Assembly: GCA_002269645.1 (NCBI GenBank)
Contig: NIVC01000208.1
Span: forward strand, 124,001-188,000
Origin: Macrostomum lignano
Lineage: Eukaryota
Direction: 5' to 3'
DNA length: 64,000 nt
Shown here: piece after piece, positions 1-51,089 of the stretch
Numbering within the stretch: position 1 is the stretch's first letter
Layout of the letters: each line of letters opens with the position of its first letter
Position numbers and translations under genes: made by a program
Notes under the pieces: model-generated
Databases searched by the model: none
The model's input: only the letters and a program-made list of their open reading frames with translations
Told to the model about the DNA's origin: nothing

Positions 1-1213
1 TGAGGCGTGAGCAGTGGCGGTGCTTGAGGCTGGAGCAGTGGCGGTGGTTGAGGCTGGAGCAGTGGCGGTGGTTGAGGCTGGAGCAGTGGTTGAGGCTGGA
101 GCAGTTGTTGAGGCTGGAGCAGTGGCGGTGTTTGAGGATTGAGCAGTGGCGGTGCTTGAGGCTTGAGCAGTGGCGGTGTTTGAGGCTTGAGCAGTGGCGG
201 TGCTTGAGGCTGGAGCAGTGGCGGTGCTTGAGGCTGGAGCAGTGGCGGTGCTTGAGGCTGGAGCAGTGGCGGTGTTTGAGGCTGCAGCAGTTAAATTTTC
301 ATGTGGGACACCCTGCCACAAACTAGGGGCAAGTGCCAGCATCGCGACTCGTGCCACTGGTGCAATTCCATCGGATGTAGAACCATAAGTAGCAGTACAA
401 ATAGTGATTGTTGCTGTCGCAGTCTCTCGCAACCGAATTGAGTTTGCTGCATCTGAGCAGTAGTTAAGGCTGAAGCAGTGGTTGAGGCTGGAGCAGTGGT
501 TGAGGCTGGAGCAGTGGTTGAGGCTGGAGCAGTGGTTGAGGCTGGAGCAGTGGTTGAGGCTGGAGCAGTGGTTGAGGCTGGAGCAGTGGTTGGGGCTGGA
601 GCAGTGGTTGAGGCTGGAGCAGTGGTTGAGGCTGGAGCAGTGGTTGAGGCTGGAGCAGTGGTTGAGGCTGGAGCAGTGGTTGAGGCTGAAGCAGTGGTTG
701 AGGCTGGAGCAGTGGTTGAGGCTGGAGCAGTGGTTGAGGCTGGAGCAGTGGTTGAGGCTGGAGCAGTGGTTGAGGCTGGAGCAGTGGTTGAGGCTGGAGC
801 AGTGGTTGAGGCTGGAGCAGTGGTTGAGGCTGGAGCAGTGGCGGTGCTTGACGCTGGAGCAGTTGTTGAGGCTGTCTGGTCAATGCAATTCACAATAGGC
901 AATATAAAAACAAGACAGAACGAAATGACAGAGAGCCAACTTACCTCGCTGACGCAGTCCAGCGGTCTCCACAGCGCCTCATACTGAGCGGCAGTGGCCA
1001 GATAGCAAGTGCCGTCTCGCTTGAACACGGCGGTGCAGTTGGGTCGCACTGCGCACTCCACCGAGCAGGTGCGAGGGTCTCGAACTCCGCTGACCTGCGA
1101 CAGGTCGGTCACGTTTCCGGGACACCGGAGATGACGCGGAAGCGGACGCAGACACCGGACGCGACAGACAGCAGGCTGAAAAGGCAGCATGGAACTTCTA
1201 GGAGTGTGAACAT
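1..1213 (-). pseudogene. PAN/Apple-mucin family copy P1, frameshifted (pseudogene or assembly indels); continues beyond window start
   Basis: ATG at 1213 (MFTLLEVPCCLFSLLSVASG) is paralogous to the ATG at 12982. A 1-nt deletion (TCCGGTGTCCCGGAAAC vs TCCGGTTGCCCCGGAAAC) shifts the signal peptide out of frame with the PAN module. Exon 1 ends at 945 (GAG|gtaagt). Exon 2 starts at 875 (ccag|ACAGCCTCA) with ASTTAP repeats. A second 1-nt loss near 455 separates it from a further T/A/P repeat (1-290). Confidence 0.75.
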
Positions 1214-3213
1214 GGCTAATATGGTTTGCTCTCCTAAGAAAATAGTTTTTATTACTACTTAGACTTGCTTTTTACAGTTCAGAGGTGTTGGTTTGGTGTA
1301 GTTTCGTGTCCGTGCTACAAGAATTATACACTCAATACGTTTCTGAGCCAATCAGCTTCTTAGCCTCTGAGATGCCAATCCGAACATTGCATTGCCTCAA
1401 AATTCTTAGAGCCAATGGTAGCCGGAGCAAAACGGTTGCAGCTGGTCCACCTGTGTGTCTGAACTGCGACCGTTGTTCCTATCCTGCCATATAGCCTCCC
1501 AAACACTACACTTATCTGACAACTGCCATTTAGCAACATGACCGGCTAAAACTTGAATCTAGTCAGGAAAGTGGCATCGATATACATTATGCGAAAATGC
1601 AACTCAGGAAGTATCATGCCAATATTTTGTCACAGTCATGGCTAGATTACATCAATGCGTATTGTTTTGCTTTTATTTATAGGAGGTTTCACTGTTTCAG
1701 CACAAAAAGTTAAATTGCTTTTGATAGGAGGCATACCCAGTTTTCATCTTTTGAGATGTCCTGCATTTCTTATGGCTCTACAAGCTGTTGAAACCCGCGG
1801 ATTCTGAACCCGCTGAATTCCAATCCCCGGAACTATTTCGACCTGCATTCTTAAATCTGAAGTCATACCTAAAAAACTCGCTAATACTTAGGATAGAGGT
1901 AGACATAAAATGAAGTAAATTCGTGTTGCATGAAGATTTGAGTGAAGCATTGATCTCGTCGGCTGGGGTACAGCGCAGAATGTCAGGCAACGTCTGTCTA
2001 AAGCAGGCATTGGCAAACCCGGTCTCTGGCCCCTGCCTCTCTCTACGTCCCTTTAGTCCTTTGAAACTTCTCTATCTTCTCATCTCATCTCTCCTTTCTT
2101 CTCTTTTATCTTTGCTTTCTTATCTCTTCTCATCTCTCTCTTCTCTTTTCTCTCTCATTTCTCTTTTCTCTTTCGCCGACCCCTGCTTCGAAAGCCGGTT
2201 TTTGGAACGGATTACTCTCATGGTTGCTTCATTCCGTTAGCCTCTTGCTGACTGCTTCGATCACGTCATCTTTCTGGTCAATTTGCAGCCCTGAAAGGAA
2301 TTTGTGTATCACCAGCTCCACTGCAGTCTGCAGCAGTCTTACAATCAAGGAAATGCACATTTCTTTGAAGGCATTTAAATTTTAAAGTATCTTTAAGTGA
2401 GACTTTGTGTTAAAATTTCCATGGCGTCAAAATTTGGTAGGTTTGTATTGTAATCGCTTTTTTATAAATTTTTCGCTTTTACAAAACCATGCTGCATTGC
2501 CTTGATTTGCCATCCACTGGTAAACTGCTGCAGAGTTTGCTGCCTGTGTTAGAATTCCTTTAACCTAGCGAGCAAGATTGTACACACAGTTTTTATTTTT
2601 ATAGTTAGAGAAGATTGATATTCATAGAGCTTTCCGTCTAGAAGCCAAAAGCAGGCACTTAAAGACAGCTGAGCACACAAATTTATTCCGCTCGTCCAAA
2701 AAAACCTCCAGAAATCCTCTGGTAGGAAAAAAAGACGAGCGGCTTGCATGGGACGTCCGAGTGCTTTCAGTATTTATTAGTTCGTAATTAGCCGGAATTG
2801 AAAACCTTTTGAGTTGTCTGACTGCAAAGTCAGAAGCAGTTAAAGATTCAATAATCAGTTAAATAACAGTTCAGTTTGACGTGATTTCAGGAAGAAAACA
2901 GCAAAATGGTTTTTAAGCATGAAAGCGAAGCTGATCAGAAATCTAACAAATCTTGAGTGAAAGTCACAACGATTCGCCTTGACATCGCTTGGGTTTCAAG
3001 CTATGCACTTTAAAATGCGCATACACTACTAGTGATTCGAAGTTGGTGAGTAGTATTGAAACTGATTAATTGGTTTAACAGCATAATGTAAAAATTGATT
3101 ACATATAGAAGAGCGCTCTAATCAAATTAAGGGTTGTGAATATCCTAAACAGTGACCGTCAGAGTAAAAATATTACTGGCCAATCCCCACTTCAACAAGC
3201 GGTTGCAGTGGCA

Positions 3214-49197: not shown

Positions 49198-50480
49198 ATG
49201 TAAAAAATGTAACATAAAAAAGTTAGATTTTTCACGTTTAAAGATGCACTGCGTGCCTTGACGTTTGCTTAAGGAACCTCGCCAATTAAAAAGCATGACC
49301 GCATCCGCATGAAAATGATTGCAAAAACGAATTCAAGCTCAGTCAACTCGGTCTCTATGGTGCGGTAATCCAAAGAAAAGAAAATTTCAGCTCGATCGAG
49401 TCAATATGGCATTGGTAAACATCAGCCTGCAGGAAGCTGACGGGTTTGCAGAGCGTGATTGATACTCTACAGTAAAAATCAGGGACTATCAAATGCCTGC
49501 TACCAAAAAGAAAGGGCTGTAAGACTAAACGCCACGGAAAAATCAAAATGCAACTTGTTCATTACTAGGAGAATTATAATTGTACGGATATACGAGCCGT
49601 ATACTCAAGCCGGTTGTGACCCTGAAGCTTGTGCTTGCACAGTCAGGCCAATGATTTTTACGCGTATAAAGAGACTGGAAAAATGTACTCTGAGCGCTTT
49701 GCATCAGGTTCGTTCTACGAGTACTTCGTATAATACTGACTATAAGTTACAGAAGTAAGCCTATAGATGTCAATTGACGTTTGAGAAAGAAATATAAGCC
49801 GAAGTGCTTTCCAAGGCATGCTTGAATAAGCTACTAATTTATGCGAAGTTGTTATATTTTATTTATTTAACAATATTTAACAATATTTATATTTAACATA
49901 AATAAAAATGACACACTTGCAGACTAGTATCCGAGCTATGTAACTTTTTAAAGAACTGCCGCCAAATTAGTCAATTTTGGTTCATTAATTTTCTAGAAAA
50001 TTTTGACATCGAGGCTACTCTGTTTAGCCGAAAATCCTGGCTTTAGGCATGGCTGAAAGGCATGGTCAGAGAGAGAGAGAGAGAGAGAGAGAGAGAGAGA
50101 GAGCAGATCTATAGTGACAATTGCATACATGTAGCAATAAAGCAGAGGGCTGTAATGCTTCTGGCTCCCTACAAAACATTCACAGCCTCATTTGCCAACT
50201 GAAAATTTCCTCATGCCTGAGTCACAACAGGGCGCTTTCAATTTCCGTGGCGGCGACAATTGCTACAGGAAAGTGAAGGCCTAAGACCCGTGCATTAAGC
50301 GCTTTTGTAGTCAAGACCCATCTCAGGAAAGAAGAAGCAGCCACTAAACACGCTCGCTATTCAAGTCGGCTCCCATTCGCTCATTCTCAAAAAATCTCTC
50401 TGTTTAATACGTACTTGCAGCTTTTTATAGTTACAATTCATCTGAGGACATCGCTCGTGAGACAGCTGCCACCGAGACCC

Positions 50481-51089
50481 ATGCATCTGCCAGCTCAAAG
50501 AATGCTGGCTGTGGCCTCCTGCCTACTCAGCCTGCTGTCCATCGCATCCGGCGTCTCCGTCCGCTTCCGCGTCGTTTCCGGTTGCCCCGGAAACGTGACC
50601 GACCTGTCGCAGGTTAACGGAGTTCGAGACCATCGCGCCTGCTCGGTGGAGTGCGCAGTGCGACCCAACTGCACCGCCGTGTTCAAGCGAGACGGCACCT
50701 GCTATCTGGCCACTGCCGCTCAGTATGAGGCGCTGTGGAGACCCCTGGACTGCGTCAGTGAGGTCAGTCGGTGCTCAATACATCATTAAAATCAAACTGA
50801 TCCATGAATGTCCTTAAATTTTGGTTAAGAAACCTTTCTAGCTCTGTTGATTGTTGCACCCACTCAGGTGGTGGAAGACAGACTGGCCATCACGACTTCA
50901 CCTCCGAACTCCGGTGCCGGCCTGAGCACCACCACCAGCTCCGTCTGCTACACAGATGGCCAGGACTGCACCATCGACTTCATGAGAGACTGCAGCAGCG
51001 ATGTGCACTACCTGCGCTGCAATCATGGAGCCTACGTTCAGATGCCGTGCTCAGCTGGCACATCCTATTCCGCTGGCACCTGTCCGTGA
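50481..51089 (+). CDS. PAN/Apple-mucin family copy P11: signal peptide + PAN-like + ~20-aa linker + 6-Cys chitin-binding-type-2-like module (167 aa)
   Basis: Exon 1 50481-50762 (94 codons, GAG|gtcagt). Exon 2 50868-51089 (ctcag|GTGGTGGAAGAC, VVEDRL...CYTDGQDCTIDFMRDCSSDVHYLRCNHGAYVQMPCSAGTSYSAGTCP*). Confidence 0.85.

Follow-up and report, generated by a model that had tools for sequence, protein, structure and literature searches.

The closest analogues of the gene family described here are peritrophin-type intestinal mucins, such as insect IIM, and matrix proteins that combine PAN domains with a mucin linker, such as LET-653. Proteins of the Caenorhabditis elegans LET-653 type carry PAN/Apple domains, a mucin-like linker and a ZP domain, and are apical-matrix proteins. 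We analysed 64,000 nucleotides of the genome of the flatworm Macrostomum lignano (GenBank assembly GCA_002269645.1, contig NIVC01000208.1, positions 124,001 to 188,000 of the forward strand); this whole stretch is referred to as the window, and all coordinates are given within it. The locus is a tandem, partly decayed cluster of one M. lignano gene family. Taken as a whole, we consider it reasonably probable that these genes encode secreted, PAN-headed, peritrophin-like mucins that act as extracellular linkers or coat and whose first exon is kept near-identical from gene to gene. A PAN/Apple head joined to a mucin stalk and a CBM14 tail appears, as far as our searches show, to be an uncharacterised combination that is confined to Macrostomum. 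The family is a new combination of known modules and not a new kind of molecule, and current understanding is unchallenged by it.

Copies of the head were sought within the window by tblastn, using one head of 57 amino acids (aa) as the query. Eleven head-exon copies (c1 to c11) were found on both strands, the aligned heads spanning 954-50,753 and the head exons 942-50,762, with E-values of 1e-11 to 1e-39. This is far beyond chance and bears out the initial annotation of this DNA, which had proposed about 11 copies in 51 kb on both strands together with the gene plan that they share. A typical signal peptide, with CLLSLLSVA as its h-region and A-S-G as the small residues, opens exon 1, which closes at GTCAGT. 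The proposed Cys spacing of the head, C-x18-C-x3-C-x5-C-x9-C-x16-C, was recovered, and C31, C50, C54, C60, C70 and C87 are invariant in 12 aligned sequences, including the divergent head c9 (40% identity) and the database paralogue P0002. The heads further retain a pair of N-glycosylation sequons: N-V/L-T, which is absent from c9, and N-C-T/S. A phase-0 GT..AG intron of 105-205 nt follows, as predicted, and exon 2 starts immediately after the AG acceptor with the anticipated VV[DE]xRL motif, which varies by copy: VVDERR (c2), VVEDRL (c5 and c11), VVEGRL (c7), VVDDRL (c8), VVD*RP (c4) and VIIDRL (c10). The predicted splice junction matches existing gene models. P0003 (A0A1I8HHS9) is spliced c11 (187/187 residues in tblastn, with 35 gap columns that correspond to the 105-nt intron), its junction reading ...LDCVSE followed by VVEDRL, and the models of the paralogues P0001, P0004-P0006 and P0002/P0008 use the identical junction. 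None of these paralogues is encoded in the window, so that additional loci or haplotypes of the family must exist.

Clean two-exon open reading frames (ORFs) are present in c2, c7, c8 and c11, with spliced lengths of 184, 459, 453 and 160 aa respectively. Their exons are located as follows.

12713-12982 (-): c2 exon 1, intact, signal peptide and PAN/Apple head (head at 12722-12892 by tblastn), donor GTCAGT
12318-12602 (-): c2 exon 2, VVDERRL, a non-repetitive S/T-rich linker of ~40 aa, CBM14/19 module and stop (Pfam CBM_19, CBM_14)
35727-35987 (-): c7 exon 1, intact, signal peptide and PAN head (head at 35736-35906 by tblastn)
34403-35521 (-): c7 exon 2, a single 372-aa ORF with VVEGRL, an ASTTATAP-type stalk of ~315 aa (24-bp units) and a 6-Cys CBM-like module
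41189-41455 (-): c8 exon 1, intact, signal peptide and PAN head (head at 41198-41368 by tblastn)
39982-41076 (-): c8 exon 2, VVDDRL, a stalk of 18-bp units (40 copies by Tandem Repeats Finder, TRF) and an 84-aa non-Cys tail
50502-50762 (+): c11 exon 1, intact, signal peptide and PAN head (head at 50583-50753), identical to A0A1I8HHS9
50868-51089 (+): c11 exon 2, VVEDRL, a linker of ~24 aa, CBM14/19 module and stop (Pfam CBM_19)

From a profile search, hhalign and AlphaFold/Foldseek comparison we identified the head as a divergent PAN/Apple domain of compact size, in agreement with the earlier assignment. The head profile was searched against 1.84e9 representative proteins and matches were taken at E<=1e-3, which gave nine proteins in all. 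These include the family itself (P0001, P0002), M. lignano Laminin_G_3-like fusions (P0010, P0014) and four multi-PAN proteins, P0009 (E=3.8e-10), P0011, P0012 and P0015, with E-values ranging to 3e-4; Pfam verifies the multi-PAN matches as PAN_1 or PAN_4 (scores 1e-15 to 1e-30). The sole exception without a PAN domain is P0013, which is of the Ig/F5_F8 type (E=6.8e-5). Comparison of the heads with the multi-PAN repeats in hhalign, where the comparison set had itself been retrieved with the head profile, gave 96.5% (E=8.8e-10, 34 core columns). The C-x3-C-x5-C framework of the PAN core is present in the heads and three disulfides are predicted. Members of the family are named 'Apple domain-containing' by an automatic UniProt rule despite their sub-threshold Pfam scores. 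Against PDB sequences the head profile gave zero matches, even at E<=10.

In the AlphaFold (AF2) model of c2 the head has a predicted local distance difference test score (pLDDT) of ~80-90 and consists of strands, two helices (residues 48-56 and 75-81) and a long strand (residues 82-97) that spans the exon junction. Foldseek matched this head to the SML-2 apple lectin and to the factor XI apple domain (probability 0.94 each); weaker matches were the EtMIC5 PAN module, MIC4 and the plasminogen PAN domain (probability 0.54-0.60), and the HGF N domain. A model of exon 1 alone was set aside, as its mean pLDDT was 62.9 and Foldseek returned a weak SML-2 match (probability 0.72) and then noise. The poor quality of that model is due to the last strand of the domain being encoded in exon 2. 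The model thus places VV[DE]xRL in the last strand of the PAN domain and not at the beginning of the stalk, and the encoding of this strand by the first codons of exon 2 would explain the conservation of the motif.

A similar signal peptide and head are found in M. lignano P0010 (PAA50913.1 / A0A267DNP4) and P0014, where they are fused to a Laminin_G_3/ConA-like domain. These proteins and the family have the head core C[SI]VECAVRPNCSAV in common, and the PAN head seems to be reused in M. lignano as a general N-terminal module. Among the structural matches, SML-2 and MIC4 are galactose-binding lectins or adhesins, and a similar head is joined to a lectin domain of the Laminin_G_3/ConA type in P0010. 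Both observations would suit a different role, in which the family would comprise secreted recognition or immune lectins like the protochordate VCBPs, with the CBM (carbohydrate-binding module) tethering the protein to mucus of the gut or body surface that contains chitin, and the PAN domain binding glycans of microbes or of food (diatoms). The CBM14 tail likewise recalls the VCBP layout. However, the recognition end of the molecule, the head, is invariant, which is the opposite of a diversified recognition repertoire, and we regard a role as immune lectins as unlikely.

The stalks have the composition of mucins, as had been suggested: Ser/Thr/Pro-rich tandem repeats follow a signal-peptide-like N-terminus, and in c7 and c8 Ser and Thr make up 42-48% of the residues and Ser, Thr, Pro and Ala together 73-86%. 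In the TRF output the arrays are Ser/Thr/Pro/Ala minisatellites with units of 18, 21 or 24 bp in 13-93 copies. All four of the expected units were found, namely ASTTAP (18 bp; c1, c5 and an orphan array without a head), ASTTATAP (24 bp; c7 and an array at 1-291), DSTTAP (18 bp; c8) and TAPTTAD (21 bp; the distal part of c5). The wide range of stalk lengths is also real, with exon 2 encoding from 73 aa (c11) to 364 aa (c8) and 372 aa (c7). Pfam scans of heads and tails gave no VWD-C8-TIL, CysD or CK domains, and the family does not belong to the gel-forming mucins.

The C-termini are of the kinds that the initial annotation had distinguished: a 6-Cys module in c2, c7 and c11, an amphipathic tail in c8 and c10, and none in c5. 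What had been missing was the identity of the six-Cys tail, which is a compact CBM14/CBM19 peritrophin-type chitin-binding module. The c2 tail lies above the Pfam cut-offs for both CBM_19 (24.6 bits, cut-off 20.1) and CBM_14 (24.2 bits, cut-off 22.1); the c11 tail exceeds that for CBM_19 (20.7 bits, cut-off 20.1) and reaches 15.2 bits for CBM_14, below the cut-off. The c7 module is recognisable via c11 only (E=1e-12, 58% identity over 36 aa). One paralogue is named "CBM_19 domain-containing" in UniProt. Foldseek of the tail returned Der p 23 (TM 0.78, rmsd 1.9), the CBM14 of CHIT1, Blo t 12, tachycitin and Avr4; the CBM14 matches have probabilities of 0.69-1.0, mostly ~1, and the pLDDT of the module is 63-83. 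The cysteines of the c11 module are arranged as C-x6-C-x7-C-x8-C-x9-C-x10-C. The 84-aa tail of c8 ends in the amphipathic segment KGILEKVGDFLLG. Both the c8 and the c10 tail end in such a strongly amphipathic charged segment, and their similarity is marginal (E=0.07); at this level we do not claim a common tail module.

These features suggest how the proteins might work. The product of an intact gene would be a secreted glycoprotein of small to medium size with a cleavable signal peptide, one PAN/Apple domain, a stalk and a variable C-terminus. The stalk is predicted to be densely O-glycosylated and extended. In a mucus-like matrix, or one containing chitin or GlcNAc, such proteins could act as extracellular linkers or as a coat: the CBM end would attach to polysaccharide and the PAN end to a second ligand, either a protein or a glycan, and the reach between the two would be set by stalk length, that is by repeat number. 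Members without a tail or with a variant tail would then act as non-anchoring or differently anchored forms. The genes are concrete candidates in a model flatworm for constituents of its mucus, of the lining of its gut or of the egg coat, and they raise the question of whether a free-living flatworm has a chitin- or GlcNAc-based matrix.

Several results weigh against this interpretation. In direct Pfam scans the heads remain below the gathering thresholds, with PAN_1 at 14.1-14.9 bits (threshold 21.4), KIAA0319_N at 16-18 bits (27) and PAN_3 at 13.8 bits (21.1). The Foldseek PAN matches are weak by E-value (0.09-0.5) and by target-normalised TM-score (at most 0.4). The 6-Cys module of c7 has no Pfam match at E<=0.01, and the Cys spacing of the c11 module is tighter than the classical peritrophin-A consensus. 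No homologue of the c8 linker and tail was found in the protein database, and for the long-stalk genes c7 and c8 the databases contain no matching predicted protein. Broken copies make up half of the total. Our literature search yielded no information on chitin in Macrostomum.

The decay of the cluster requires an amendment to the initial annotation, in that dead or doubtful copies account for about half of the 11. Besides the four clean genes, c5 and c9 are doubtful and c1, c3, c4, c6 and c10 are degenerate. These copies and the isolated stalk arrays are listed below.

1-291 (-): stalk array of 24-bp units (A-S-S/T-T-A-T-A-P; TRF and translation), overrunning the left window edge
326-1213 (-): c1, probable pseudogene or assembly indel; signal peptide at 1124-1213, head at 954-1124 (tblastn)
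23783-23881 (-): c3, pseudogene; head fragment (residues 25-57) that contains an in-frame stop and a Cys to Trp change (tblastn)
24999-25330 (+): c4, pseudogene; signal peptide followed by a head that is interrupted by a frameshift (head at 25062-25224 by tblastn)
27087-27344 (-): c5 exon 1 (head at 27093-27263 by tblastn)
26305-26917 (-): c5 exon 2, VVEDRL and ASTTAP array (ORF end 26603), without a C-terminal module (TRF and translation)
28345-28572 (+): c6, pseudogene; intact-looking head without the signal-peptide h-region (head at 28390-28560 by tblastn)
42895-44629 (-): orphan array of 18-bp stalk units, 93 copies, probably a dead stalk (TRF and translation)
45770-46087 (-): c9, divergent head with its own signal peptide, all six Cys and donor GTGAAG; 40% identity to c2
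47631-47825 (+): c10 exon 1, probable pseudogene (head at 47697-47816 by tblastn)
48079-48279 (+): c10 exon-2-like ORF, VIIDRL, a short T-rich linker and the amphipathic tail KYWEKVINAIKEREND; acceptor shifted by 1 nt

The array at 1-291 has no head exon of its own in view; it follows the CBM remnant of c1 on the downstream side and is 84-92% identical to the c7 array. As it overruns the left window edge, the cluster may extend further. In c1 a 1-bp deletion parts the signal peptide from the head. Of the intron only the 5' part is kept, and it adjoins the ASTTAP array (455-874) directly; the rest of the intron is missing, as is the beginning of exon 2. A degenerate CBM remnant (326-451) lies in another frame. 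Some single-base lesions, for example the 1-bp indel of c1 in a TT run, could be errors of long-read assembly. The exon 2 start of c4, at 25310, contains a stop codon (VVD*RP), and that of c6, VA*DQLL, has a frameshift after it. At the 3' end of c5 exon 1, 7 bp are deleted, and phase 0 is preserved only via an alternative GTCGGT donor downstream; the distal 21-bp TAPTTAD array of c5 (26305-26623) is out of frame with the ASTTAP array. The c9 head was matched by tblastn at 45800-45961(-), with 52% identity to the query head. A 51-bp in-frame deletion removes 17 residues of c10, including Cys2 and Cys3, and the ATG is out of frame.

The orphan array (1.7 kb, repeats at 42923-44610), situated downstream of c9, is preceded by a good acceptor, ttccttcag, at 44629. 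Its mucin frame closes after 39 codons, and the TGA-bearing unit (GCC TGA ACC) has itself been amplified many times, leaving a 359-aa ORF that is open in the PLLQP[QE] frame only. We considered the array as a long stalk of c9 and rejected this, the acceptor being good but the mucin frame interrupted by TGA after 39 codons. It is probably a dead stalk that is still expanding as a minisatellite; the alternative is a frame-switched Pro/Gln-rich product.

Six of the head exons form three head-to-head pairs, 1.0-1.6 kb apart: c3/c4 (23783-25224), c5/c6 (27087-28572) and c9/c10 (45770-47825). At least one partner is degenerate in each pair. This arrangement suggests that the duplication unit was an inverted pair.

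With disabling lesions in five of the 11 heads and a 1.7-kb array that is closed in the mucin frame and has amplified its stop-bearing unit, the locus might be thought a largely non-functional graveyard of decaying copies and minisatellites, in which the gene models are prediction artefacts on repeats. The ratio of non-synonymous to synonymous divergence (dN/dS) is in part compatible with this, being ~1 for pairs that involve c5, c6 or c7, where counts are small. Among c1, c2, c8 and c11, however, dN/dS is 0.04-0.33, and the head is therefore under constraint. Four copies have complete two-exon ORFs with canonical splice sites, and the 372-aa ORF of c7 ends in an intact 6-Cys module. The retention of all six cysteines in c9 and P0002, at 40% identity in the case of c9, and the conservation of the sequons, of which c9 lacks the first, also speak against wholesale decay. 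We therefore judge a graveyard to be very improbable and retain the reading of functional genes that are accompanied by dead copies.

The two exons of the family have had different histories. Exon 1 is 91-96% identical between genes, with a synonymous divergence (pS) of 0.05-0.18, and the similarity of introns and of 300 nt of upstream DNA is at the level of shuffled sequence. Self-BLAST confined the homology tracts between copies to 250-300 bp. For identical gene pairs, pS is 0.75-0.92 (saturated) in the CBM versus 0.06-0.14 in the head; synonymous divergence of exon 1 is thus roughly 10-fold below that of the C-terminal module of the same genes. The GC content at third codon positions is 0.74-0.78 in exon 1; in exon 2 it is 0.35-0.45 for each of the five genes except c11 (0.73), and intron GC is 0.32-0.42. 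The four-gamete test was failed by 15 of the 36 informative site pairs.

A near-identical exon 1 next to random introns and upstream DNA and a saturated CBM rules out duplication of whole genes followed by uniform divergence. We also rejected the head exon as part of a transposon, since the tracts are 250-300 bp long and their flanks are not shared. Judged from these sequence comparisons, the head exon would either have been homogenised by gene conversion or have been shuffled recently onto old tails. Short-tract, GC-biased gene conversion is the most likely cause and the one that we favour, with recent exon shuffling as the alternative. The initial annotation had described a birth-and-death family. 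The pseudogenes and a segmental duplication fit this description, but exon 1 alone is homogenised or shuffled, and the process is not plain birth-and-death. Stalk length changes by gain and loss of repeats, and whole genes duplicate and die. As a small natural case, the cluster lends itself to the study of short-tract gene conversion or exon shuffling, and of changes of protein length driven by variable-number tandem repeats. More tentatively, and with considerable doubt, we suggest a 'constant head, variable tail' mode of diversification, in which short-tract conversion limited to the 250-bp exon 1 would keep one PAN ligand-binding head the same in all paralogues, with stalk length and anchoring module free to diverge. 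If this were true, a single binding specificity would be shown at many distances and on several substrates, and the family would be a matrix or recognition repertoire organised unlike known mucin or peritrophin families.

Database searches agree with the statement in the initial annotation that this is not a named family: no named or characterised family was found, and the entries that exist are unreviewed. A protein search with spliced c2 returned two clusters only, both M. lignano "Apple domain-containing protein" entries in UniProt (unreviewed). In searches of 5.8e9 and 1.84e9 proteins, close relatives were found solely in M. lignano. Our search of the Macrostomum literature found nothing on a PAN-mucin-CBM family. 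The family is absent from the main text of a positional RNA-seq paper and from the text of a paper on adhesion.

The apparent restriction of the family to one lineage, its fast gene birth and death and its saturated tails might also point to reproduction. The molecules would be identical to those proposed above and would act in seminal fluid, in the female tract or in the egg coat or eggshell, their turnover being driven by sexual selection or conflict in a hermaphrodite. Many fast-evolving reproductive transcripts of M. lignano are reported to have no homologues (PMC5977470, PMC7336406), which we count in favour of such a role. On the other side, apple, chitin, mucin and peritrophin domains are not mentioned in the text and available supplements of a prostate in situ hybridization screen (PMC5977470), nor do they appear in the main text of the positional RNA-seq study, and the head is conserved rather than fast-evolving. 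A reproductive role is possible but, in our view, doubtful, and we continue to prefer linkers or coat of a mucus-like matrix.

The window is eukaryotic in character and contains introns, retrotransposon fragments and micro- and minisatellites. Copies c1 and c2 sit in the segmental duplication (873-4568 and 12641-20437, 82-97% identity). It also carries, at 3214-4588(-) and 19077-20421(-), two copies of a gene whose secreted product is very rich in Gly in its C-terminal half and which gives a weak Pfam match to ALK_LTK_GRD (22.6 bits, cut-off 24.5) in a partial ORF. The N-terminal Cys domain of the Gly-rich genes was considered as a PAN head and rejected (hhalign probability 0.2). A retroelement remnant of the type without long terminal repeats (LTRs), with a 399-aa ORF containing RVT_1, lies at 30446-31645(-). 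An LTR-type remnant with broken ORFs containing RVT_1, an integrase core (rve) and a zinc-knuckle gag lies just beyond the cluster at 52975-56521(-). In a 450-aa ORF at 58060-59412(+), unrelated to the family, a 24-bp unit that encodes the acidic repeat AEETAEEK occurs 34 times and is followed by non-repetitive sequence; the 81 aa of it that were scanned gave no Pfam match. Satellites lie densely between the genes at 7995-9044, 21149-22156, 22694-23072, 41807-42514, 46793-47238 and 59704-60208. They comprise minisatellites with units of 33 bp and 23 bp, each ~1 kb in length, as well as long microsatellites of ATAG, AGAT, TAGT and TAGA.

Of the known systems, peritrophin-type intestinal mucins resemble the family in being secreted and in combining a Ser/Thr/Pro-rich tandem-repeat stalk with a 6-Cys module of the CBM14 clan. 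They have multiple CBMs (CBM14 / peritrophin-A domains) on either side of their PTS mucin domains, whereas the Macrostomum proteins have a single compact C-terminal CBM, or none in some members. Peritrophins also lack a PAN/Apple head, which the Macrostomum family has, and the chitin binding of the latter is a prediction. LET-653 shares with the family an N-terminal PAN/Apple region, an O-glycosylatable mucin-like linker that follows it and secretion as a matrix protein. It differs in having a ZP domain and two PAN domains; the family has one PAN domain, no ZP domain and a C-terminal CBM14 or short tail. The head-profile search of 1.84e9 proteins detected no sequence relationship with LET-653 beyond the PAN clan.

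The best structural matches to the head, SML-2, TgMIC4, EtMIC5, factor XI, prekallikrein and plasminogen, share with it the C-x3-C-x5-C core and an outer disulfide. Unlike the family, these apicomplexan microneme and vertebrate proteins are multi-apple arrays or carry the domain at the N-terminus of a protease, and their sequence identity to the head is only 13-18%. The loops of the family head are shorter than theirs, with 57 aa from Cys1 to Cys6. The SmPoMucs of Schistosoma mansoni are alike in being encoded by flatworm multigene clusters, in being secreted and mucin-like, in combining a variable number of tandem repeats with one conserved domain, and in diversifying by recombination. Their repeats, however, are N-terminal and their conserved domain is C-terminal and not PAN, and homology to them was detected neither with spliced c2 nor with the head profile. 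M. lignano P0010 and P0014 share the organism, the signal peptide and the type of head with the family; their heads are 30-45% identical to it in the aligned parts, and they differ in having no mucin stalk and in ending in a ConA-like/LamG domain.

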